The notes below the pieces were generated by a model. That model worked only from the letters and a program-made list of their open reading frames with translations. It did no database searches and was not told the DNA's origin. The position numbers were made by a program, and so were the translations under genes. A DNA stretch of 64,000 bases from Geosiphon pyriformis uo1 (taxonomy: Eukaryota; Fungi; Glomeromycota). Below are positions 1,763 to 64,000 of the stretch, one piece after another (positions within the stretch are counted from its first letter, which is position 1; the number at the start of each line of letters is the position of its first letter). The stretch covers positions 934,373-998,372 of the forward strand of contig JAAOMT010000003.1 of assembly GCA_016748015.1 (NCBI GenBank), read 5' to 3'.

Positions 1763-2360
1763 CGAAAATCCTGGTCGTGCGTCAGTTCACTGAAAGTTTC
1801 TATTGTAAATAATGCTTGACATCAGTCTGATGATAAAAATCCAGACAATGGGTAATAATACTCGTGACAATTTCAGATTCCCACGAATTATTTTGAAAAT
1901 CTATCGCCCAGTTTCGTTTCTTGCCAAAAACGCAGTAATAAGAGAAAAACACTTTCTCTATTCTCGACTTAAAGAATAAAATTTAAAACAATCGATATCT
2001 AATAAAGTTGCATACAAAAACCCCCCACTCCTTCTCCTCCCCTCCACGTTACTCATAAGTGATAGCGAATAAATTTCGACTGCTACAACAGCCCTGCCTG
2101 TTTAACGATTACAACTTACCTGGAAGATTTTGTACTACACTAAAATTTTCGTCTAAAATATTAAATAAACCAACTAAAAAGTTTTGCTCATCGATTCCCA
2201 CTCTAAAAATCCCATTTCTTACTTTGTATTAATTATATCCATATAAAAGTAATAAACTTGGTGGAGTTTTTGCCATTTTCTACTTTGATGATTTAACAAT
2301 TTTAATTCTTCAAAGTAAAACCTTTTTTTTTGCTTCAAAGCTTTTCTCCTTTGACTTAAT

Positions 2361-5300
2361 ATGTCGTCATTTCCAAATAACAACAGTCACTTCAAGGCTT
2401 CGGGTAACACCGCTTTTTTTGGAAATAATGTCGACCCTTCCAATCCAAATAGTAACTCCCCTCCAGCGGCTAAACGAATCTGCTTGACTTCCCCTATCAA
2501 TGATTCCACTCAATCACATCCCGTTCTTGATAATATCTCTAAAAACTTATCATTATCACATTCCTTACTTTCACAAACTAGCTCCCAACCTCATCTTTTT
2601 CCTGCTGAAAATCAGCAACAGCTTCCATTTTTGCCTCAGCGGCAGCAACAGACACAACATGAAAATCAAAAAACAACTGGAAAATCACCAAATGATGAAA
2701 AGACAATACAAAAAATCTCAACGGATGAGCTCGCCACTCGACAGGATGTCGCACGTCTCGAAAAAACTTTGGAAGATTTAGTCCAAATACTGGAAAAAAC
2801 TTCTTTGAAAAATCTGAATGAGAATTCATCATTTTCCACTGAAAATAATTCAACAAAAATTCAAGATCCTACCCAAAGCTCCTCTACCCACAACAATTCA
2901 ATCATTATAGATCTTCCAATACTTGGAAATGACGAATATTCAAATTTCGAAAATCAAGCGTCCAGAAAATCCCCTTTGAGCGCTTTGTTGAACCATACTT
3001 ATCCAGAATCAGTTGTCGATCTCGTCAATAAAATGTCAAATTTCTCAAGATTCTCCTTTAACCCTAATGCTTCCTCTTCAAAAGTATCTACTTGTGAAAC
3101 TGCGAATAAAGCCAACACGGTTTCTCCTGCACCTCCTTCACGTGAGCTGTGTCGGCAATTAATTGAAGATTTTTTTAATCAATTCAATGTCTATTTGCCG
3201 ATCCTTGATCGTAGAAAATTTATTGACCATTGGCGTGATAAGTCAAAGCCTTCACAACTAATCGTGAGCGCTACTCTGGCCGTTGCCGCTACAAGATTTT
3301 CTGATGATCCCTCAATTCAAAAGACCCAAGAGAAACCAGGTGGCGTATTTTATGACGCTGCAAAGGTATACAACCTGAAATTTTTACTTGAATCTCAAAT
3401 TTTTTGCTTTTTCCTATTAAAACTAAAATTCATATGAATTTGAAAAAAATTCAGAAATTGCTTGACACAATGTACGATAAACCAAGAATAGAAACTTGTC
3501 AAGCATTGTTTTTATTGGCACACGCCCAACTTAGCACAGTACGCTTTGAAACTGCTTTGGTTTATTTAGGAATGGCTGGTGAGTGTTCTGAGAATTAATA
3601 TATCCCATTAACCTGCTCACCTTTCAGTCAATCAATAACAAGAATCTCACTCTGAATTCCTAGTCCAAATGTCTCATTCACTGCGATTAGCTCAAAATGA
3701 GCCAACAATATTACCAGAAGAAGATGAAGAAAGAAGAAGAGTGTTTTATTGTATCTATTGCGTAGACAGGTATGCTCTGACCTTTGATATTTTTTCATCT
3801 TGATTAGTAAAATTCCGTTTTAAAGTTTAATCGATCAACATTTGATTTATTATAGATGGTTATCATTTGTACTTGGCAATCCTTTTACGATTGATGACAT
3901 TAACGTCAATGTGCCATTACCGACCCTTCCATCAGCAAATCGATTGACCCGGAATTTCTTTGTATCTTACATAAAACTTTCTAGAATTTTGGGGCAAATC
4001 TGGAAATTTGGTTATTCCTCACAGCCGACAGCATCTACCGGCAATTGGATTGATCATGCGATGGATCCTAAAAGTATGCTGCGGCAGATACGTGGAGCTT
4101 TAGCTAAATGGTTGCAAGACTTGCCTGAAGATCTTCAATATCAATACTTGCCTTCGACTGATAGAAGGACAATCTTTCAACTGGCAAGCTTTACTACTTT
4201 TGCCGGTATGGACAAAACATAAAACGAGTTATAAGGAGAAATTTAGATTTTTCTATACCTAACGAATATTCTTTATAATCCATAGGCCACCTAAACATTC
4301 TTTTTCATACGTGCCTGATTCTACTTCATCAACCTTATATTAAGCGTCAAAGTGAAAGTGGAAAAATGGGAATTTTACATCAAGGGCCGGTTAAAACTTG
4401 TTTAACCGCAGCCTGTACAATTACTGACATTGCTAAAGTGACGCGTCAGCTCGACAAGAATTCATTCAAAAATTTTCAATATTCAATTTATGGTCTTTTT
4501 CAATCAGCTGTGCTTGAATTGGTTGTAATGAATGGATCACAGGAGCATTCACAGAATGCGAAAAAGCTTTTTAATGACACTTTGGAAGAGTTGAGGTTCG
4601 TGGGCACTAGCAGTAATATTTTCAATTTGAATGATTCAGTAAAGGAGCTGGAAGATTTGGCGCAAATAGCTAATGGTGGTGGCTTGCAGTCTGGTATCGA
4701 ATTTGTTGTACCATTAAAATTAGCCGCCCAATGGTTGGATAATCCGGGGACGTCCATGGGCCCGTTAGGAGTAGGTTCCAATAGCAGTGCTGGAAGCGCA
4801 GGTGGATTCGGGGCGATACGAAAGAACAGCGGACTCCCAACCAGTTCAAGTCAAATAAATGCAGCCCCCCCCATTTCAGGAAATTTTGTAACGTTCAACA
4901 ATAATGAATCACAAAAAATAAACAATTCTGTAAATTCAGAGAACATTCAAAATCGAAACAGTAACAATTTTAACAATAGCCAAAAACAATTCTCTTTATC
5001 ACCTGCCTCCTCTAAGAAAGAAGATATAATAATGACAGATTTTTCAAAATTTGATTCAATGGCAAATGTAATCAATAGCAACTTTGACTCAATATCTTCA
5101 TTTTCGGCGCCTTCACACTCTCAACGAGATTCTGTATCACCAATACCTTCACATCAAACTTCTCAACGACTTGATTTAAAATCTCAGCAACAAAAGCACC
5201 CACACCTAAACCAACCCGATCAAATGTTTGACATGTCACCATCAGGCATTTTTCTTGCAGATGAGCAAGCAATACAATTCCAAAGCCTTGCTCTCCAACA

Positions 5301-51666: not shown

Positions 51667-52509
51667 TGCTGCCTTGATTGGGCCGAGTGTCTGATCACAT
51701 GTAAAAAAGGCATGAGCCACATTTAATTTGAAATCTTTTTTTGATTTTATGTATTTAGGTAGTGGTTGGATTGCACTCATTAAACTTGCAATAAAAAATA
51801 AATAAAAAACTTATTACCAAATTTTTGTTAATTATAATATTGATAATTTTGTATTTTTTAATTTAATACTTATTTTAAAATTAAATTTTTTTGGCTTTAA
51901 TTTAAATTTATATATATATGTAATTATTTTATTATTTATAATAATTTTACACTTATTTTTTACAAAAATACAATCTAAAATTAAAGTAATAACTATAAAT
52001 TCAATATAAGTTAAAATATAATTTTATAAAATTTTATATTTATATTATATTTAATATTATTAAAATTTGCAATAATATTATTAATCATAAAAATTGAACT
52101 TAAATTTTTATTAGATTAGTACTTTATTATTTTTATATTTTGTTAAATTTAAATAAATTTGACAATATTTTTAAAGAAAAAACCAGCTGCAAAACAATTT
52201 ACTTATACAAATTTAACTTATTGATTAAAAAGTAAAAACAAAACAAAATTATAAATAATTACTTAGCATTTTATTTATTTTTAGCAAGAATTTTAAAAAA
52301 ATATTTATATATTTAAAATTAAATTATATATAATATTAATAATGATTAAAAATTTTGGTGTAATTAAAAAATTACAAAGACAGTGTATAATTTTAAAATA
52401 GTTTTATATATTATTGATAAAAATATTAAAAATTAGATTAATATTTAAATTAACAATTTTTTAATTTCTATATTACATATTACACATTTTATATAATCTT
52501 TTGTTTATT

Positions 52510-53852: not shown

Positions 53853-56800
53853 CTCTTCCTCCTCTTCCTCTTCGCTCTCCGATGATTCATCTGTTATTGA
53901 ATCATACCGAAGGGCTGTAAGGATGAATTGTATTAACAAAATTGAAATTTAACGATAAAAGCCTAGAAGGGATTTGAACAGAATTAATTTGATGAAATTC
54001 TAAAAGTAAAAACGTACATGACGCTTTTGCTCCCCTAGGCTCCTCTTCTTCTGACAAAGATTCAGCAGATTCATAGAAATTATCCAAATCATAATTATGC
54101 TTCTTATGTGAGGTTTTCTCGTAACGTGATGGTGTTGTGGGGGAGTAATGCGGTCCGAATGAATCACTTCCAAAGCTTTTAGCCGCTTTGGAACGATTGT
54201 AAGCCTCATCTTGCTGTCAAATAATAATGTAATATAAATCAAATCCTACTTGAGCGTAAAATTTAAAATAACTTCTTATCTTACCAAACTATTCCGGAGA
54301 GAGCTATCAGGTTTTTCTGTCGGCCAATCTGGCAAGGCTTCATAACCTGGTAAGGTATGATTGAGTACAAGAGCCATTGATCCAATAATAAAACGGTCGC
54401 GTCCTTTTGAAATTGAAATGAAGAGGTCTAATGAATTGCCAGAGGCTTTGAACTTTTCAAAATAATTCTTCTTACCAGCAGAAGGACTTTCATCACTTGG
54501 CGCCTCTTTTTCACACAAAAGAATTTGCTTCAAATTATCCGTTAATAAGGTACTTTTACTTTCATCTTTTTCATTTGAAGCTGCCTGATTGCTTTCAGCC
54601 TTTCCACTCGAGACTCCGTTATTGTTACCTAACAAAATGAGACCTCTCAAAAGACGAGCCCGATCTCTAATATCATAGTTCAGATCATAACGTGCCAAGT
54701 TCAGAACATATTGAAACAGGAGGTTGAGGGTATGATTTGTTGGATGAAGAGAAACCAGCTTTGCACTCAGATTTATTGTTTGCAACTTCACAATATTATC
54801 TTCATTACTGAATGTCTTAGCAGCTTTTCTAAGCACATCAGGGGCGACCTTTTCTAGATTCTCAGCATATTGGCCAACCAGCCATAAAATGCTCGCTCTC
54901 GCCCGTGGTACTGTAATTTGATCCAAGGATTTCGCAAGCTGAATTATCATATCGGCATTATCTTGGGGTTTTAATTGTAAAAGCCTCTTGATAACCACGA
55001 TGGATTCTGCGACAACAGCATCTTGATAATATAAAATGATTGTTAATAATCCCTCAAGAAATAATACATATGAATAAAATAAGAGGCAAACCATTTTTGC
55101 TCCACAATAATTTCATCAATCCATCCAGACAGTTTTCAGCCATTTCCGGTATTCCTATGGCGCATCGCCCAATCGCCTGTATAGCAGATGTTGCAAACTC
55201 TTTGTTGGGACTCTTGACGTATTCCTTATGGCAAATAAAATTATAGTTATAATTAAAGCAGCCTGATTTTCAGATAAATTATTTGGGTGAAAAGGACTGT
55301 ACCTGCAACTCTCTCAAAAGGACAGTTACATTACTTTCTGTTCCGATCAAAGTCATGATTTCCATCTTTAAGTTACGCACAAAACCGGGGTCTGTAGATC
55401 GAACAAAAAATTGTTGAAGATGTGGTTCAAAAAGGTACTATTCGAAGAAATGTACGTCAAATATCAGCCTCCAGGAATAATTTTGAAGTTGAACACGGTA
55501 CAATATTTCATGCTTTTCAAAAGGGATTGCAAACCGGCCGTTGAGTCGCCATTGTGGCTATATTTGCCAGCACAACATACTGAATTTCCCGATGTGTTCT
55601 CAACAATCTTACTAGAGGTTTGCTTATCTTATATGAATCTGTAATTGGAGCTAAATGATAATATATTTTTGCAACTGCGAGGACTACCTAAATAGATGTT
55701 AAGCAATAAGTTATCTTTATTCGAGTATTTCAAAACAATGACTTAGTTAAGAGGAAAACATACCCCACTATTTCGACTTTGTAAGAGTGGTAAACATGAA
55801 CGTAGAAGGAGCTCATGATCAGGGTCTAAAACATATGAAAAATCGATTGTTCCTTCCGTACTATCTGAATCATCATCGGAATAGAATTCCTTGGAGGCTT
55901 TATGTGAATTGGATCGTCCAGACTTTTAAATTTAAATTTTGTTAAAAAGTAGAGATCGAATAATAAGCAATCATATTAATTCTACAAATCGACTTACATT
56001 ACGGTTGGGATCTAAAAATTGAGTCCTGGATGTACAAAAATTATGTGAGTACTCCTCATCATTTGGAAAAGTTTTGGATAAAAAATTTTACCTCGCATAT
56101 CGTAATAATAATCCCATTATAACAATTTGCCCCCATTCGTCGGCGTCTATTAACATACGACATAATTTTCGATAATGAGGATGTATTAAATCCAGTCGTT
56201 CTGGACAGACTTCATTAAAAGCCATCACGACACTTCCAATAGTAAATGATGAATTGTCGTTTAAGAGTGTAGTAATTGTGTCAACCAAAGTGTCTTTTTG
56301 GGTCGGGTCTAAACTTTATTGGACATTGTTGAAATTGTTTTTTAAAACAACGCCAATCAATTAGGATGAAAAAACATCAAAGATTCGGGTGTCTTACCTG
56401 TAGCATTTAGGAATGGCGGTCGCGGCTGTTTTGCGAACATAGGGTGACAAGTCGTTCATACATTTTTTGATCGCAAGCAATACAATAGGACTTATCACAG
56501 GAACGCGAATTCCAGACATCACCCGCAATGCCATTGCCCTTATTAGTTGATTTTGATCGGTAAGATCTTTTTGAAATGTATTAATGGAGAGTAGAGCGAG
56601 ATCTGGCTCTTGCTCAGCGTATCGTAATATGTAAATATAAACAAGCTTGCGAATTTCAATGTTCTGCGAGGCAACATTTTTCACAACATCTGGAAAGAAT
56701 TCTGATACATTGCGTCCTTTGGAAATCATCTTTGAATTGAGAAGCAAGCAAAGGTATGTAAAATTGAATGAGCATTTTAATCCATACCATTTTGAGAAAA

Positions 56801-57113
56801 GTGGGAGTAAATAAAGTGAATGGAAAGAGCAAAATAAATATTTGGGCGTTGACAAATTAATTGGCGGAAGATTATTTCGAAGTCGTACCGCAATCAACCT
56901 TTTAAGTCCATCCATTTTTTCGCGATCGTGCCTTGAATCTAACTGTCGTCTTATATCGCGCATTTTTTCTTCTGATGTGTCAAAATAATGCCCCGAAGAG
57001 GTAGCCTCCAGCCCGAACTCACGCGCATTTTCGACCAAACCCTCAGAAACCTTTTTTGAAAGTTTAGCTGCGTTTTGAGCAAACGCAGCCGCTTTGTAGA
57101 GATAATCAGACAT
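53655..57113 (-). CDS. APL6: AP-3 adaptor complex subunit beta (Apl6/AP3B), multi-exon
   Basis: KRLIA|[53 protein letters not shown]; [19 protein letters not shown]; [11 protein letters not shown]; [14 protein letters not shown]; LPDWP. Acidic poly-E C-terminus with no visible ear domain. Confidence 0.95.
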
Positions 57114-57372: not shown

Positions 57373-57903
57373 TCATGTTGTAATGTTGTAATCTATTGAT
57401 GTACACATGTTGCGATAAAATCTTTCTCGAAGGTCGAGGCGACCACCTCCAAGATAAAAAACCCCAAAGCCTAAAATTCCGAATATGAATAAGACTTGGT
57501 ACAGGTTCATACTTGTATCTTGATCATCAGTGGCGTTAAGGCAGTGAAATTGGAATCCTTCAAGATTAAGTGTATACCTGCCAGGATGATTTCCAAGCGT
57601 TTGGAGACGCTGTTGAGATTTGCTATAAGTTAGGTCGAGTTGTTGGACTAGGAAAGTTTCACCTAGTGAAGTTTGTTGATCGTCATGCCGATTAAGAAAC
57701 TCGAATTGAAAAGTTTCTGGAGGTGCGAACGTTTGGAAGAAGCAGAGAAAGCACTTGATGTCCTCTTTATTTTTCAGCAATTTGGGTTTTATGATAATCT
57801 TGTTAAATTCGGGATTTCGGTTGATTAGAAGAAGGCTTGATAAATCTGGAAAATTTTCTCGTAATCTATCTAGAAGTGAGCCAACTCCTCGTGTAATTTG
57901 CAT
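57373..57903 (-). CDS. Hypothetical protein, 176 aa, single C-terminal transmembrane segment
   Basis: Intact intronless ATG ORF with gene-like composition between AT-rich flanks. Hydrophobic LYQVLFIFGILGFGVFYLGG near the C-terminus. No family recognised. Confidence 0.6.
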   Translation of the reverse strand: MQITRGVGSLLDRLRENFPDLSSLLLINRNPEFNKIIIKPKLLKNKEDIKCFLCFFQTFAPPETFQFEFLNRHDDQQTSLGETFLVQQLDLTYSKSQQRLQTLGNHPGRYTLNLEGFQFHCLNATDDQDTSMNLYQVLFIFGILGFGVFYLGGGRLDLRERFYRNMCTSIDYNITT

Positions 57904-58189
57904 CGTTAAAATCAGAGTATGAAATTTTTTTTACCAAAAATCTTTTGCAAGCAATTTATAAAAATTCAAATTCTTGATTTCATCCAGAATTGAAAACCTG
58001 TTTTTATTTGTGTTCGAACTGTACCATGGAAAAATCCTTTATTTTCTTGATATAAAATAAATGAATACAAAAAAGGTTGTTTTCAATTGAGTTGAAAATC
58101 TCGATGGAATACTTTTCCCACGCCATAAATCAAATTTGCCATTGATGAGATACAATATTAGTTCACTAATTAAGAAAATAAAATGGTGT

Positions 58190-59620
58190 CTATCCATTTT
58201 CATCTTTGCCAATTACAGCCCTGCAATTCCGGCAGTTGTACACTTCGAACCCTCCAATGCTTTTATGTTGCCACACCAGCTACAAGTCTTGGATTTATAA
58301 GACTCATTTGGATACAACACGGACTCCTAACTCCTCGGCCTTGGCGATCAGACATTGATGGAAACGGTAATGTGCCCAGGGAAGCATTTTCTACACAGTC
58401 TTCGTATAATTTTTTCGGCTTACGATTTCTGAAATCTCAAATGACGGGATAAAGATTGCTTCAAGCTCTCGAGTGAAGAAGACGATCGCCTTCATTCTGC
58501 AGACGCATAATCCTTCGCCGTAGGTGGGAGACTGCTTTTTCAAGTTGCCGGCCCCTGCATTTCTTACGAGACACCCAGTTTAGCTTTTTTGGAATTAGGA
58601 CATCCATATACTTGTGCACACGAACAATTCGTCCGATATCATTAGAGCCTATTTTACCATGCCTCTATAGGGAGAATACCAAGTGAAGGGTATGCGAACG
58701 CCAGGACCAATAGAGACTACATGGGTGGAGCTGTCCGCTTGGTTTTCGCGGATTTGTCTTTGCGTCTCATAGACCAAGGAAAATCTCCATTCGTTGGTTT
58801 TTTGAGAATATGTAGATTTGCCATCAGATGTAATCTTGTGCGGATAGGACGACTTATTACTTGTGCGTTTAGTTTCGAAGTGAAAAGGCAATAGCATACG
58901 TCTATCCTATAGGAAGTTTTGAATTAAAAAAATGTAGTTCTAGAATTTTTTTAAGAAACTAAAATCCTTATCTTGCATATGCATAACTGGTGAAGTGTGA
59001 ATATAAGACAAAAAATGATCCCAAGATGATGAAAAATTCAGAGCGCGAATTGTAATAGTCTGATGCAATGACTTATGTGATCGGAAAGAAAGATGATGTG
59101 CTGGCGTACCTTGTTATCGCTTTGTATTACGTCTAATAATTCTGATCAATAGCCTCATCCGTGATATTAGCAGGGCTCTACAAAACTCTTGTTTGCCCCA
59201 GATCCCGAAGCATCATAGACTTCGGCCATTTCTTTTCCGTAATATCATTTTACCACAACACCTTTTGTTCCACCCGACTACGGTATAAACGCAAATCTAT
59301 CTATCGCTTCAGAAGCTACCTCTGCACCTTGACCAGCAACGTGTAGGTGAGAGTTTCTCCCGAATGTCGTCACTTGTTGCATACCGCCATTGTACTGGAT
59401 TTTTCTTGTGCTTTTTGCTTGTTCTGCGATGAAGACAGTGTTGCTGGTGGAGATTTGATCGTCGAGAACGACGAATTTGCAGAATGGAGGGAGATGTATT
59501 GAAGGAGGTCGAGAATGGGTACCCACAATTCTGGGAAAGGACCCGCTTTTGTCGCCCGAGATCCTCTTCCGTAGAGGATGCCTTTTGTATGTTTAATTTG
59601 TAAAAATCGCTTTTCAATTC
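58190..59620 (-). pseudogene. Fanzor2-like (eukaryotic IS607 TnpB-derived RuvC nuclease) pseudogene
   Basis: Colinear motifs across shifting minus-strand frames: LSQ/LWVP, LRLYRSRVEQKVLW, SPANITDEAI, LSFRSHKSLHQTITIRA, ENQA..VVSIGPGVRIPFTWYSP (RuvC-I), GKIGSNDIGRI, AIFIPSFEISEIV (RuvC-II), KMLPWAHYRFHQCLIAKAEELG, ESYKSKTCSWCG...CRNC (Zn ribbon), GKDENG (RuvC-III). Confidence 0.9.
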
Positions 59621-59799
59621 ATTTCGACTTGCTTATTCTAATCACAAATCTCATTAGCTATCCAATAAAGTAGCCTTTCTTGGCAGCATGCAGATATTCA
59701 TGACAAAACACATGAATTAAAAATTAATTTACAAATAGTCATTTTCAATATTTGATTTATTTTAAAATGAGAAGTATAACAACCCTTTTTTTTATTGAT

Positions 59800-62700
59800 T
59801 TTTTGACAATGCATACATCTTTATTAAAAGTCTTATTTTTTTTATTCTTTAAAAATTTGCTACTTTAGTCTTTCATATTGTTTAAATTTAAGGTTTTAAA
59901 TCTGTTTATTCAAAAGTTTTTTTAATAATAGTAGTAATAAAAAATGGTAAAAAAAAGCTAAAGTTAAGTTTTATTAATACAAAGTATAAAAAAACAAAAC
60001 CATTATAATTCTAATAATAGCAAAAACAAAATAATATTTTTAAATAATAATAATATAATTAATAAAAACAAAAATAGTTTATAAATAATATATTTATACA
60101 ATTAACAAAAATCAAAAAATTAAATTTAAAAAAGGTATACTGTTTATTATAAAACATAAATACCAAAAAAAATATTGTTGTATTTTTGTATTTTGCTTTA
60201 TTGTTTTAATTTAAAAAAAACTTTTATTATTAATATATTTTTATTATTATTATTTAATATGTAAACTCAATCAAAACCTAATATAATATAACAATTTTAA
60301 TGCTTTAAATTAAGTATAATTCATATTTTTTCTATATATAATCAGACATAAACCCAGTTTAGATTAAATTACATTGAATTTATAAAAAAAAAATTATTCT
60401 TAAGTGTTATTTTCTGTATAATAATAATAATAAATATATTATTATTTTTAACAAAACTACTTAATTATACAATAGTTGTATTTGTATTAGATTTGACAAA
60501 ATCAAGTTAATGCTTCCAAAAAAAAATCAACTTAATATAAAATTCATTATTAAGAAGATTAATATTATACTTATTTATATATTTAATATTAAAACTATAC
60601 TTATTTTTAATAATTATTATATCTATAGAAAGCTAACTTATAATTTTACCAAAAACAAATACATTATTTTATACAACACAAACCAAACTTTTAAATTCTA
60701 TATATAAAGCAAAAAAAATGTTCAAAAAAATAGTAATTAAAGCAATTAAAAAATTAATAAACTTAATAACAGATTTAATCAAAGCAATTAAACTTAAAAT
60801 TTAAAACTTCAATTTAAAATTAGTAACAGAATTAATAATAGACAATAACAAAAAACAGCAAAAAAAGAAAACAAAAAAGCAAAAGTTTCAACATAAGATT
60901 TTTTACTAATAAAAAAAAACAAAAAACATAAAACCAATAACTAATTTAGTAAACAACTTAAAAAAAAATAATATCTTGTAATTTTTAAATATATAATCTA
61001 ATTCTTAATATTTATAACAATAATAATACTTAAGAGTTTTTTACCAAATATAATTATTGATTTAAAAACTATATTATTAATTCTAAAAGCAATACAACCA
61101 AAAAAAAATTAACTAATTTGGTTTTAAAATTTTTTTTTAAAATAATAATCTTTTTTTAATTAAAAAAAAATCTAAATATTATCTTTTTTAATTAATACAG
61201 ATTAATTATTAAAAACAAAAACAGCAAAAAAAAAGTTTTTAAAAGTTATAATAGCATATTGTTACAAGTTAACAAACTTTAATTTTATTAAAATAATAAT
61301 ATTAAAAACACCAAAAATATTTTTAATATTAATAAAAAAATATAACAAGAAAGATATTATGAAGTACAACAAAAATAAAAAAAAAGATTCAGAAATTACT
61401 ACAAAAAATTTTGTAACTTTAAGTATAATTAAAAAAAACCCATTAATAAAAATTTTAATAATAACAATCAAAGAATTTTTAAAAGCAAAATTCAAACAAA
61501 TTAACTTAATATTGTTTTTAAAAATTAACTTAAATTTAACAAAGCCAAATAACAAATAAAACAAAAAATCAATTAAGATTAATTTAACTTTAAAAATAGT
61601 ACCAAGTATTAAAATAGAAGCTACTTATTTAAAAAAATTTTAATAATTGAAAATTGTTTTTTATATACTATTAAAAACAATATTAAAAAACAAAAAAACA
61701 AAAGTTAATTTAGTTGTTATTAAAAAAATTTTATTTAAGATTTTATTTAAAACTACAAAAGAGTTTAATATAATAATAGCAAATACAAATAACTATTATT
61801 GTTTTTTTGATTTTCTGGTTTTTTTGGCTATTTATAAAGTAATAATAATAATATTAGTAATAAGAACAGAAAAAACCAACTTGTTAATTAGTGTTATTTA
61901 TAGAAAAGTACAAGAAAAAAAATAGGAAAAACAGATAAAAAATAAACCAATAGGAAAATAAGACTTAGCAAATAAGCACAATATCAGTAAATTATGGTAC
62001 ACTGTTTAACAATAAGCATATTGTCAAAAAATTATGACATATTACTTAACAATAAGCATATTGTCAAAAAAAATAAGACATATTGCTCAAGAAAATATAA
62101 GATTTTATATATAATAAAAGTATTAAAAATAGAAAAAGTAATTCCAGAAGAATTTAATAAAGTTCATATTAATTTAGAACAATACTTCTTTCTTTAAAAA
62201 ATAGTTTTTTACAACTTGAAATGAAATTATTTTTATATTAATAAAATTATCTATTATCATTGAATCCATATTATTATCATTTAATTAAGAATATTAATTA
62301 CTTTTGTCACTATTAACACTTTATATTAATAAAATCCAATATTTAACTATATTAGAACAATAGCTCTTGATTATGACTATTAACAGAATACTAATTTTTT
62401 ATTTTTTTTTATTTTATTTTTTTTATTTTTTATTTTTTTGTTGTTTATTAATTAATTAAAAAGATTAAGCACTAAGTATTTGACATTAAAAATAGTCTGA
62501 TAAAAGACCCAAAAATAAAAGTAAAAATTTAAGAATAGCTTATTAAAAAAGCATAACTGTCAAAATAAACTAGTCATCATATTAAAAAAAAAAATTTATG
62601 AAAAAAATTATTAATTGAATCTTTGTCCATTATACAAAAAACTTAATCAAAATCTTCAGAAATAATTAACTTTACCAACCATTAAATACCAAGTTATGAG

Positions 62701-63720
62701 TTTGTTATTTGTTTCAATACTTTAAATAATCATTTATAATACTGGTTTATTATTAAAAACTTTAAAACTTTTAAAAAGAATAAAAACAATATTTGAACTA
62801 ATCTGTATGTATTTCTTGAAAAAAACTTTAATTAAAAAAAATTACTAGTTAAAGATAAAAAAATGTCTTAGAAACTGCTTTTAATAATTTATTATTACTA
62901 ATATTTAAGAAAAATATTACCAAGATATTTTGTTTAATTGTTTTAATAATAAAAAAATCTTCTTTTATTAAAATTTTATTAGTTATTATAAAAAAAGCAA
63001 TATTTGAAACTTTTTTACTTTTTGTTTTAATTATGGTCATAAAAATAGGAAAAAAAAAGTATATTAATATTAATATTAAAAAAATTTTTTTAAATATTTT
63101 TATATTTGTTTAAAAAAACAGCTTATAAAAAAATTGTTTTTATTTTTAGATTAAATAAAATTATTATAATAAAAAAATAATATAATTGAAAAATTAATGT
63201 AAAATTTACATATATATAATTAAATTAAAAAAAATTAATAGTCAAAATAAAAATATTAATAAAAAAATTGAATTACATATTTGTATTTTGGTTTTTTTGG
63301 TAATTATACATAAATATAAATAATTAATTTACTATTTACTTATTTAAAAAAAATTAATAGATTTATTATACTATAATACAATAAAACCAAAAAAAAATTT
63401 AACAATAAAAACATTTAATTATTTTAATAAATTGTTTTATAATAAAATAAAATAAATTAAGTTAATATTATTAAATTATAAAAATAAACAATAATTATTA
63501 AATTAATATAATTAACATAAAAAATATTAAAACAATTTAAAATATTAAAAAAAAATTATAATATTAATATAAATTAAAATTAAAATATAGTATTATTAAT
63601 TAAAATTTAGTTTAAAAACTTTTCTAAATTTTTTTTAATTTTATTATCAACATAGAATTTTTTTATTGTTTAATATTTACAATTTAATAAATTGTTTTAT
63701 GTTTTAAAATATAATTTAAT
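59800..63720. other. Extremely AT-rich zone, probable hypermutated repeat relic
   Basis: G and C nearly absent. Residual K/I/N/L-rich frames and A-rich strand bias; abuts a probable LINE 5' end. Confidence 0.55.
62006..62086. repeat. Tandem duplication of a ~40-bp unit (2 copies, ~20-bp subunits)
   Basis: TTAACAATAAGCATATTGTCAAAAAA... starts at both 62006 and 62046. Confidence 0.85.
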
Positions 63721-63731
63721 TATAAAAAAAC

Positions 63732-64000
63732 TTCTTTCTCTCTTACTTCCACAAACCCTCAAAAAGCGCTTTTCTGATAAAGAAGTTTTTTTTTTATTTT
63801 TATTTCTCTTATTAGTATTTCACAATTTCTCTTTCTAATAACCCATTTTTCATGGATCTGGAGACTGTCTCTAATAGCAACATGTCTAAAAAAAAGGCAC
63901 CAAAGGGTGCTTTTTATAGTCCTGCTGGTGATTTCTTCTTACAAAAGAAGAAAGTCATGTTTGGGAATGTTAAACACTCAGGTGATGAAAAGGATATTTC
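63732..64000 (+). mobile_element. Probable 5' end (pyrimidine-rich UTR + ORF1 start) of a second LINE, running off the window
   Basis: Abrupt compositional change at ~63732. ATG 63852 opens MDLETVSNSNMSKKKAPKGAFYSPAGDFFLQKKKVMFGNVKHSGDEKDI, CpG-poor like the upstream LINE. It resembles from memory the ORF1 N-termini of this family. Confidence 0.6.

Follow-up and report, generated by a model that had tools for sequence, protein, structure and literature searches.

Very probable fossil of an IS607-type transposon that encoded a Fanzor2 nuclease in an AT-rich eukaryotic genome

The relic and its genomic setting

Within the window (the whole stretch of DNA analysed here, 64,000 nt), the minus strand carries at 58193-59568 the relic of a repeated element that is truncated at both ends. 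Its surroundings are unique DNA, and an adaptin gene, with its exons on the same strand, follows ~1.1 kb downstream. The other ORFs of the window include Adaptin_N (split over exons), PTR2, EST1 and LITAF, indicating a eukaryotic host context. Intron-bearing eukaryotic genes flank the relic on a contig of 1.6 Mb, and its base composition is AT-rich, like that of the host, a eukaryotic (fungus-like) genome of 29% GC assembled to 128 Mb. By the size of the assembly and the ORFs of the window, the element thus resides in a eukaryote, which is a criterion for Fanzor2. Independent Illumina-type contigs (run X1) showed 0 differences from the window over 58100-59700, so the defects of the relic are not assembly errors. 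An Rfam search of 57500-60000 returned no match.

At the 5' end of the relic, 59325-59568 holds a putative, degraded C-terminal part of an IS607 tnpA gene (serine recombinase), together with what is left, in the +1 frame, of the Fanzor2 N-terminal domain (ELWVPILD..NSSFST..), broken by several frameshifts and deletions. DNA homology with the paralogs extends to 59568, and the flank beyond is single-copy. Against the tnpA/Fanzor piece of the closest paralog, L002, this remnant scored 78 with a null maximum of 38; its alignment with a more distant TnpA (from locus L052) was not significant, and the tnpA search of the genome gave no support for a remnant in the window copy. It is through L002 only that a tnpA remnant is weakly suggested here. 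The start of the nuclease, a remnant of the HTH_OrfB_IS605 domain with stops and a deletion, follows at 59253-59342 (TLLVKV..LLKR*IDLRLYRSRVEQKVLW); it aligns with LLVKVYPNRPQKQLLKGWMRLARFAF of L002, and intact relatives have PF12323 at the same position. Frameshift-aware comparison of 59230-59720 with distant Fanzor N-termini and the L052 TnpA gave scores within the shuffle range, and the assignment of this upstream part therefore comes from homology within the genome. The upstream motifs LSQ/LWVP and LRLYRSRVEQKVLW (59250-59570), which a preliminary description of this DNA had read as part of the nuclease, do belong to the same repeat, by paralog DNA homology and by the L002 score, but they do not stand out from shuffles against distant proteins.

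A REC/WED remnant at 58943-59194 (FCRALL.., PANITDEAI, LSFRSHKSLHQTITIRALNFSSSWDHF) contains one TAA stop and one frameshift; it aligns to intact relative P0002 from residue 274 onward when frameshifts are allowed, and it also matches paralog pieces. Overlapping with it, 203 nt (58906-59108) are absent from the contigs of runs X2 and X3 and have GT..AG bounds on the minus strand (AACAAG/GTACGC ... TTCCTATAG/GATAGA). Next come a WED strand and the RuvC-I motif at 58652-58906 (LLPFHFETKR..HKITSDGK..VVSIGPGVRIPFTWYSP), with VVSIGPGVR at 58694-58720. The stretch 58394-58664 has a helical linker and, past a frameshift, the canonical RuvC-II strand (GKIGSNDIGRIVR..LRRRIMRLQNE, KAIVFFTRELEAIFIPSFEISEIV; IPSFEISE at 58427-58450), and is terminated by an in-frame TAG at 58391-58393. 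The TNB/zinc ribbon and RuvC-III occupy 58193-58390 in three frames (KMLPWAHYRF..AEELGVRVV, NESYKSKTCSWCGNIK and IGGFEVYNCRNCRAVIGKDENG), with WAHYRF at 58361-58378, SKTCSWCGN at 58267-58293 and, at 58190-58240, YNCRNCRAVIGKDENG plus TAG.

That last TAG (58190-58192) lies at the junction with unique flanking DNA. All paralog matches stop at query position 1455-1457, equivalent to ~58194, and the downstream flank is single-copy, whereas the paralogs run on for ~70-90 nt beyond their stop codon. Missing from the window copy are thus ~17 codons at the end of the gene and the right end of the element (~70-90 nt), where, by analogy, the guide RNA would be encoded. A stop directly after DENG, as previously noted, is indeed present; it marks the cut-off end of the repeat copy and is not a point mutation.

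Homology and catalytic residues

A frameshift-aware alignment, the check that the preliminary description had proposed, matched minus-strand 58193-58906 colinearly to P0001, an intact metagenomic relative, with 134 of 235 positions identical (57%) and a score of 568, against 31-41 for eight shuffled queries. The alignment requires four frameshifts (~58665, ~58500, ~58309 and ~58250) and spans the in-frame TAG at 58391-58393. Single-frame tblastn of the relic gave E values of 3e-52 against P0001 and 1e-39 against P0002. Taken alone, pieces of the window scored 13.7 and 18 bits to PF07282 (the Pfam Cas12f1-like TNB family), below the cut-off. Other matches from single-piece Pfam and PDB searches (bZIP, Phenol_MetA_deg, vWF repeats) were misleading or too weak and were set aside.

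All peptides of the minus-strand motif series described earlier are present, in the order given and spread over three frames. At RuvC-I, the codon that had been reported as GGT (Gly) in place of the catalytic Asp is exactly that, at 58706-58708; it aligns with Asp324 of ApmFz2, and DPG is invariant at this position in the paralogs and in 34 relatives. The other two catalytic codons are kept: the Glu at 58303-58305, in NESYKSKTC, maps to ApmFz2 Glu467, and the RuvC-III Asp at 58202-58204, in KDENG (the second D of DRD), maps to Asp501. Beside the latter, a nearly invariant D is replaced by G (58208-58210) and an invariant R by K. The catalytic Glu had been placed in IPSFEISE, which proved incorrect: in this clade it is the invariant E of E.YTSKTC, and the canonical strand has an invariant Pro.

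The TnpB/Fanzor superfamily has been defined by an ordered motif, the RuvC-I D, a [TS][TS]xx-C4 zinc ribbon and RD (Bao & Jurka 2013), and these elements are found here in that order. The window version reads IGPG (D>G) ... YKSKTC-SWC ... CRNC ... KD and is colinear with P0001. Mutation has removed the first D from the window copy, and the R of RD as well. With at least four frameshifts, at least four in-frame stops, the Asp to Gly substitution and truncated ends, the copy is dead, in agreement with the earlier judgement.

Paralogs in the host genome

The genome contains ~100-140 copies with a mutual identity of 64-90%. Matches numbered 73 by DNA, 99 to the RuvC-I piece and 139 to P0001; PF07282 matched 82 times, 69 of them over the cut-off, with paralogs reaching 72.9 bits. 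The existence of intact paralogs had been suggested. Among the 136 of 463 candidate places scored, no match covered the whole query free of stops, and open frames in the genome copies reach ~300-350 aa at most; intact relatives do exist in other sources (P0151, P0002 and P0010), and these combine HTH_OrfB_IS605 (PF12323) with TNB. PF01385 (OrfB_IS605) had no match in the genome and only sub-threshold matches in the intact relatives.

The IS607 tnpA search returned 131 matches, many of which immediately precede a Fanzor copy in the same orientation. The serine-recombinase genes beside the paralogs are degenerate; L052 has an intact tnpA ORF of the MerR-plus-Resolvase type (64.2 bits), upstream of and overlapping the nuclease ORF. 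Carriage by an IS607 element with a serine-recombinase TnpA, as applies to Fanzor2, was thus found. At least 100 copies, old, mutually diverged and apparently all dead, record a large burst of an IS607/Fanzor2 element of bacterial type that had its own serine recombinase.

Assignment to Fanzor2

Best hits, fold, N-terminal domain, shifted Glu and tnpA synteny support assignment to Fanzor2/IS607-TnpB, the family originally proposed: paralogs pass PF07282, relatives carry HTH_OrfB_IS605 plus TNB, and tnpA relics lie upstream. A profile built from paralog pieces found 9313 proteins, led by full-length proteins with HTH_OrfB_IS605 plus TNB. The best solved relative by sequence is ApmFz2 (Acanthamoeba polyphaga mimivirus Fanzor2, TnpB-like protein L79, PDB 9B0L), with E 3.9e-11 for a paralog piece and 6.8e-18 for P0151 (phmmer), and it is also the best by fold (Foldseek E 9.8e-20; VIA Z 21.3 over 400 residues). 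Sequence and fold best hits thus place the family closer to IS607-type TnpB/ApmFz2 than to Fanzor1.

The catalytic site is rearranged, with the Glu ~50 residues C-terminal of the canonical RuvC-II position. Invariant residues of the 34 relatives include E586 (EAYTSKTC), which aligns to ApmFz2 Glu467, and P535, on the canonical RuvC-II strand. A Fanzor2-type N-terminal domain (NTD/RuvC-R) precedes the HTH in the predicted model of P0151. Only 9b0l aligns to this model from residue 74 (chain residue 53), while TnpB and Cas12f align from ~178. The model contains a helix at 80-88 (pLDDT ~90), and PFWN..LS.KLWLPT is a conserved motif of the domain; the window retains of this domain a degraded ELWVPILD only.

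ApmFz2 shares with the family the DPG of RuvC-I, the shifted Glu in NE.YT.KTC, a C4 ribbon with LGAS.VY.C, DRDEN and a structured N-terminal domain, which TnpB and Cas12f lack. It differs in length (520 aa, against ~600-650 aa in the fungal and metagenomic relatives) and has 16-19% identity over the fold; the window copy is a broken fragment that lacks the RuvC-I Asp and the 3' end. ISDra2 TnpB (PDB 8H1J/8EXA) agrees in the core WED-REC-RuvC-ZnF fold, with Z 18.7-18.8 over the part that starts at model residue 178. Its RuvC-II Glu is at the canonical place, however, an N-terminal domain is absent, and the partner transposase is a Y1 enzyme of the IS200/IS605 type. Prokaryotic IS607 "pro-Fanzor/TnpB2" elements (Moorena, Calothrix, Chloroflexota, Thiomargarita) likewise have tnpA followed by tnpB on the same strand, with a long overlap of tnpA with tnpB in frame +1. 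Their identity is 25-47% in the best tblastn segment and their matches span residues ~35-630; their hosts are bacteria, whereas the element studied here is chromosomal in a eukaryote, multi-copy and decayed. Across eukaryotes, giant viruses and bacteria, tnpA was seen nested in frame -1 within the Fanzor2 N-terminal domain.

The window copy is thus very probably the broken fossil of an IS607-type DNA transposon that once encoded Fanzor2, now dead, without the first half of tnpA and the 3' end, and one of ~100-140 copies that all appear dead.

Alternative interpretations

Fanzor1, a clade restricted to eukaryotes that Mariner, hAT, Helitron and similar transposons have captured, is the type described for early-diverging fungi (Spizellomyces, Rhizopus, Mucor), and the full-length relatives of the window copy, at ~600-650 aa, approach SpuFz1 (Spizellomyces punctatus Fanzor1, PDB 8GKH) in length. 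SpuFz1 also comes from a eukaryote and has the common core of a TnpB-type RuvC and a zinc ribbon. It is nonetheless a much weaker match: it was absent from the sequence matches at E<=1 and ranked 33-35 by Foldseek (E ~1e-6 to 2e-6, with 2e-6 at rank 35), GtFz1 likewise ranking 33 or lower, whereas ApmFz2 came first by both measures and alone aligns the N-terminal extension. SpuFz1 has another N-terminal/REC architecture and is carried by TIR transposons, not IS607. In the family described here, the PF12323 HTH is present, IS607 tnpA is syntenic and paralog homology ends ~70-90 nt past the stop codon; these observations speak against a Fanzor1-type architecture and against carriage by eukaryotic TIR, Helitron or similar transposons, and make a Fanzor1 relic very unlikely. 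That the sequence is an intact gene, its apparent frameshifts being introns or assembly indel errors, is more improbable still. Introns are common in eukaryotic Fanzor genes according to the literature, and one GT..AG segment, of 203 nt, is skipped in the contigs of two runs. However, the four frame changes of the core each occur within a few bases and leave no space for introns, in-frame stops lie within conserved blocks, the X1 contigs agree base for base, the catalytic Asp is Gly and the 3' end is missing; the 203-nt skip itself costs conserved coding sequence, its length is not divisible by 3, and no ORF >82 aa remains after it. Similarity by chance, or to an unrelated zinc-ribbon or Cys-rich protein, has a negligible probability: an isolated CxxCGN piece did match von Willebrand factor repeats better than Cas12f or L79, and single window pieces fell below the Pfam cut-offs, but the colinear match at 57% identity extends over ~240 residues of an intact TnpB-family protein, far above the shuffles (at most 41), and the paralogs score well on PF07282. 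An unrelated zinc-ribbon family, named at the outset as an outcome that would overturn the assignment, is thus not borne out.

Close relatives with an equal tnpA-tnpB layout are common in cyanobacteria, Chloroflexota and Thiomargarita, but the length of the contig, the intron-bearing neighbours, the host-like AT-rich composition and at least 100 diverged copies over many contigs leave next to no room for bacterial contamination or a very recent bacterial transfer. Co-option of the relic, whether as a non-coding RNA that is transcribed and spliced or as a transcript upstream of the adaptin gene next to it, is unlikely, if less so than any of the foregoing. In X2 and X3 the contigs are confined to ~58103/58136 to ~59576/59535, and 58905 is connected to 59109 across GT..AG bounds that fit the splice consensus well on the coding strand. 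Run X1 was made from the X2 sample; its contigs contain all of the DNA, at even depth, and do not have the 58905/59109 joint. Downstream, the exons of the adaptin gene are in the orientation of the relic. The relic may therefore be transcribed and spliced, and a dead gene is not necessarily inert DNA. Against co-option, the kinds of the runs are only guesses ("DNA?", "RNA? probably DNA"), neither strand nor transcript ends can be read from contigs, 3 bases at the junction are ambiguous, a 203-bp deletion allele would look identical, and transcription by itself is no function.

Overlap of transposase and nuclease genes

An intact element of this type has two genes, encoding a TnpA serine recombinase with a MerR-type HTH and a Fanzor2 nuclease. 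The nuclease is built of an N-terminal domain, an HTH, REC/WED, a split RuvC, the Glu of which is displaced C-terminally by ~50 residues, and a C4 zinc ribbon. If TnpB and ApmFz2 are a guide, TnpA would mobilise the element, and an omega RNA transcribed from its 3' end would direct the nuclease to cut TAM-flanked sites that lack the element, so that repair would copy it back. The window copy is incapable of any such step, because half of tnpA and the 3' end are gone and the nuclease has frameshifts, stops and the Asp to Gly change. In itself it is an ordinary fossil of a known family, and since this copy and every paralog seen are dead, no new editor is to be had from it. The interest of the locus lies in description, as the record of an old and large IS607/Fanzor2 burst in a eukaryotic genome and as an example of relics that escape ORF tracks.

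We suggest tentatively, and with some doubt, that 59325-59568 is the fossil of a dual-coding segment and that throughout the clade (fungal, metagenomic, giant-virus and bacterial members) nearly the whole tnpA catalytic domain is contained, in frame -1, within the opening ~150-215 codons of the nuclease ORF. In the literature consulted, the IS607 ORFs are described only as "partially overlapped". A long, frame-specific overlap would bear on both the origin of the Fanzor2 N-terminal domain and the annotation of these elements. The structured N-terminal domain of Fanzor2 (NLS plus RuvC-R in ApmFz2) would have been encoded by overprinting on the transposase gene, which, should the long overlap be unreported, would explain its origin. 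The evolution and expression of transposase and nuclease would be coupled, and tnpA would be systematically hidden from gene callers.

Our search of the literature on IS607 or Fanzor in Rhizophagus and mycorrhizal fungi found nothing relevant. In the Fanzor census of Saito et al. 2023 (PMC10432273), Fanzor2 is already described as broadly present in fungi and a glomeromycete protein is listed, CAG8578432.1 of Gigaspora margarita. Going by its listed sequence (..AIDPGIRT..DDLISRTTHAPYKKRN..IIIIPPFNGS), this protein, an annotated gene model from a different species, is close by eye to L013, a member of the second subfamily in the genome (..DRLISLTAQAPAKKRN..IIIIPPFNAS).

Identification of the relic and its relatives

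The preliminary description had read an ordered series of Fanzor-like peptides on the minus strand at 58190-59620, and all of them are present, in the same order, across three reading frames. They include the RuvC-I piece VVSIGPGVR (58694-58720), IPSFEISE (58427-58450), WAHYRF (58361-58378), SKTCSWCGN (58267-58293) and, as the last peptide, YNCRNCRAVIGKDENG followed by TAG (58190-58240). Single pieces were nearly silent in Pfam, with 13.7 and 18 bits for Cas12f1-like_TNB (PF07282), and in the PDB too, the CxxCGN piece even favouring von Willebrand repeats; identification therefore had to go through relatives. An alignment of tiled open pieces from the paralogs and the window (A3), searched against 1.84 billion representatives, gave 9313 matches, 807 of these below 1e-30. 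Among the best were P0001, a 286-aa "putative transposase" from a JGI metagenome (395 bits), and the full-length proteins P0002 (647 aa), P0151 (648 aa) and P0010 (596 aa); the full-length relatives carry HTH_OrfB_IS605 and Cas12f1-like_TNB domains in Pfam.

Frameshift-aware protein-to-DNA alignment, which had been proposed as a check, was done with our own implementation, using shuffled queries as the null. Window 58193-58906 matched P0001 colinearly with 134 of 235 identities and a score of 568, as against 31-41 for shuffled queries, and the motif series is therefore real and far above chance. This alignment contains four frameshifts (~58665, ~58500, ~58309 and ~58250) and one in-frame TAG (58391-58393); with P0002 as the query it reaches 59194, with four in-frame stops.

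P0010 is an uninterrupted 596-aa Fanzor2 ORF (L078; NCBI GCA_040384025.1, contig JAWVHG010002864.1) with eukaryote-type neighbours, namely ferric reductase/NOX, polysaccharide lyase 14 and Evr1/Alr. It is possibly a still-active nuclease gene in another eukaryote. At this locus the tnpA (IS607 serine-recombinase) frame runs open through 233 codons but is interrupted by a stop inside the MerR HTH.

Assignment to Fanzor2

By its best matches in both sequence comparison and structure prediction, the family is assigned to Fanzor2 rather than Fanzor1. The mimivirus Fanzor2 ApmFz2 (L79, PDB 9b0l) was matched by the C-terminal piece of a paralog (E 3.9e-11) and, with the HTH included, by P0151 in phmmer (E 6.8e-18); ISDra2 TnpB and Cas12f ranked after it, and the Spizellomyces punctatus Fanzor1, SpuFz1, was absent among the P0151 sequence matches. 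An AlphaFold model of P0151, made with 34 homologues, had an overall pLDDT of 66 and a well-predicted core. Its first Foldseek match was again 9b0l (E 9.8e-20), with a VIA-align Z of 21.3 over 400 residues, whereas SpuFz1 entries ranked only 33-35; a Fanzor1 identity is very unlikely. ApmFz2 was also the sole structure to align into the N-terminal extension of the model (residue 74 with chain residue 53), whereas the alignments of TnpB and Cas12f begin at about residue 178.

Fanzor2 was described by Bao & Jurka (2013) as an IS607-linked clade and listed from a few yeasts, and Saito et al. (2023) found it broadly present in fungi; the locus is therefore a new, dead copy of an already described kind.

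Catalytic residues

Across the 34 aligned relatives, D440-P441-G442, E586, four cysteines and R617-D618 are invariant. The phmmer alignment maps D440, E586 and D618 to Asp324, Glu467 and Asp501 of ApmFz2, the published triad, in which the Glu is shifted by 50 residues. The window copy has accordingly lost the RuvC-I Asp, for which the reported GGT (Gly) codon at 58706-58708 was confirmed, and retains the catalytic Glu (58303-58305) and the RuvC-III Asp (58202-58204), with the nearly invariant D616 changed to G and the invariant R617 to K. The Glu of FEISE, earlier read as the RuvC-II Glu, is not the catalytic one: on the canonical RuvC-II strand the 34 relatives share an invariant Pro, and it is E586 that corresponds to Glu467.

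Ends, surroundings and integrity of the copy

Paralog matches all end at ~58194, but the paralogs share homology among themselves for 70-90 nt past their stop codon; the final ~17 codons are therefore missing from the window copy, and so is its right end. The guide RNAs of TnpB and Fanzor are encoded at the right end of the element. The stop noted earlier after DENG does exist, but this TAG is the first flanking triplet and not a change within the gene.

Both flanks of the relic are single-copy. About 1.1 kb downstream lie Adaptin_N ORFs (Pfam; 54276-57113, minus), which are evidently the exons of a single gene for an AP-complex large subunit, and PTR2, EST1 and LITAF-type ORFs occur elsewhere in the window. 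These flanks and genes mark the relic as resident eukaryotic DNA and not contamination. Nor are the breaks an assembly artefact: Logan contigs of sequencing run X1 show zero differences over 58100-59700, and those of runs X2 and X3, the latter from a different study, agree with the window wherever they cover it. A 176-aa ORF between the adaptin ORFs and the relic (57373-57903, minus) has no Pfam match. Extremely AT-rich blocks (GC 8-20%) occupy 60000-64000, starting just upstream of the relic, and 52000-52500; they show only weak similarity to other loci, consistent with low-complexity sequence.

The X2 and X3 contigs, whose coverage stops near 58103/58136 and 59576/59535, join 58905 to 59109 and omit 203 nt (58906-59108, minus) with GT..AG borders that, on the coding strand, fit the splice consensus well. 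The joint would reflect either splicing or a deletion allele. X1, which shares its sample with X2, carries the complete sequence at an even depth. A spliced transcript of the relic is the probable reading and a deletion allele the less likely one, the kinds of run being guessed.

A repeat family in the genome

The assembly, in which the window is C787:934373-998372, comprises 128 Mb in 792 contigs (GC ~29%), and scoring was limited to the best-ranked candidate places. Among these, the 1.5-kb stretch has at least 73 DNA matches elsewhere (64-90% identity), and the RuvC-I piece at least 99 at the protein level. PF07282 was found in at least 82 places, 69 above the curated cut-off; a search of the genome for PF01385 gave no match. 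The intact paralogs hoped for did not appear among the scored matches, nearly all of which contain stops, with longest open frames of about 170-350 aa. At the position of GPG in the window copy, the paralogs have retained the canonical DPG.

A second, younger-looking Fanzor2 subfamily is present at L013/L060 (contig C701, ~385600-386150), L015, L016 and L028. Identity among its copies is 85-89%, and they are less broken, with one TAA separating two long pieces; the highest TNB score (72.9 bits) also comes from this subfamily. A table in Saito et al. (2023) lists a Gigaspora margarita protein resembling it.

IS607 context and nesting of tnpA

The metagenomic contig of P0151 (L052) carries an intact 246-aa ORF (2078-2818) with MerR-HTH and Resolvase domains (64.2 and 28.6 bits), which is an IS607-type TnpA. 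With this query, at least 131 matches were obtained among the best-ranked genome candidates, many of them immediately 5' of a Fanzor relic in the same orientation, as on contigs C708, C621, C411, C718, C694 and C669, and also on C704, C773, C658, C778 and C702; PF00239 has three matches in the genome. DNA homology between the window copy and its paralogs extends upstream to ~59568. Window 59325-59513 aligned to the tnpA/Fanzor piece of L002, the closest paralog, with a score of 78 (null maximum 38), and gave no significant alignment to the distant TnpA; only a trace of tnpA (59325-59568) is left in this copy.

Nearly all of the tnpA gene is nested within the 5' portion of the Fanzor2/pro-Fanzor ORF, with overlaps of 300-776 nt, as at L052 (tnpA 2078-2818, nuclease 2202-4148); the other overlap loci were L078, L080 and L082-L084, viral L085-L163 and bacterial L164-L243. 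In six diverged intact metagenomic/eukaryotic elements the nuclease ORF stays free of stops in frame +1 over about 140-215 tnpA codons. Synonymous shuffling of tnpA, element by element, predicts 2.3-5.3 stops in the overlap (P of zero stops 0.0005-0.049 per element), so the open nuclease frame across tnpA is maintained. Of 62 giant-virus/IMG-VR loci, 52 share this layout, as do 56 of the 71 bacterial loci, the nuclease always lying in frame +1 relative to tnpA wherever nested. The overprinted part has a conserved motif, persists in one element where no tnpA is detectable and, in the predicted structure, corresponds to the Fanzor2-specific N-terminal domain. Published IS607 descriptions that we located mention only a partial ORF overlap. 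At L052 and L080-L084 the recorded gene calls list the long nuclease ORF alone (about 580-650 aa) and miss the intact tnpA ORF that lies in another frame; databases built on such calls will under-count IS607 transposases. In the window, 59325-59568 is a fossil trace of the nested tnpA/nuclease segment.
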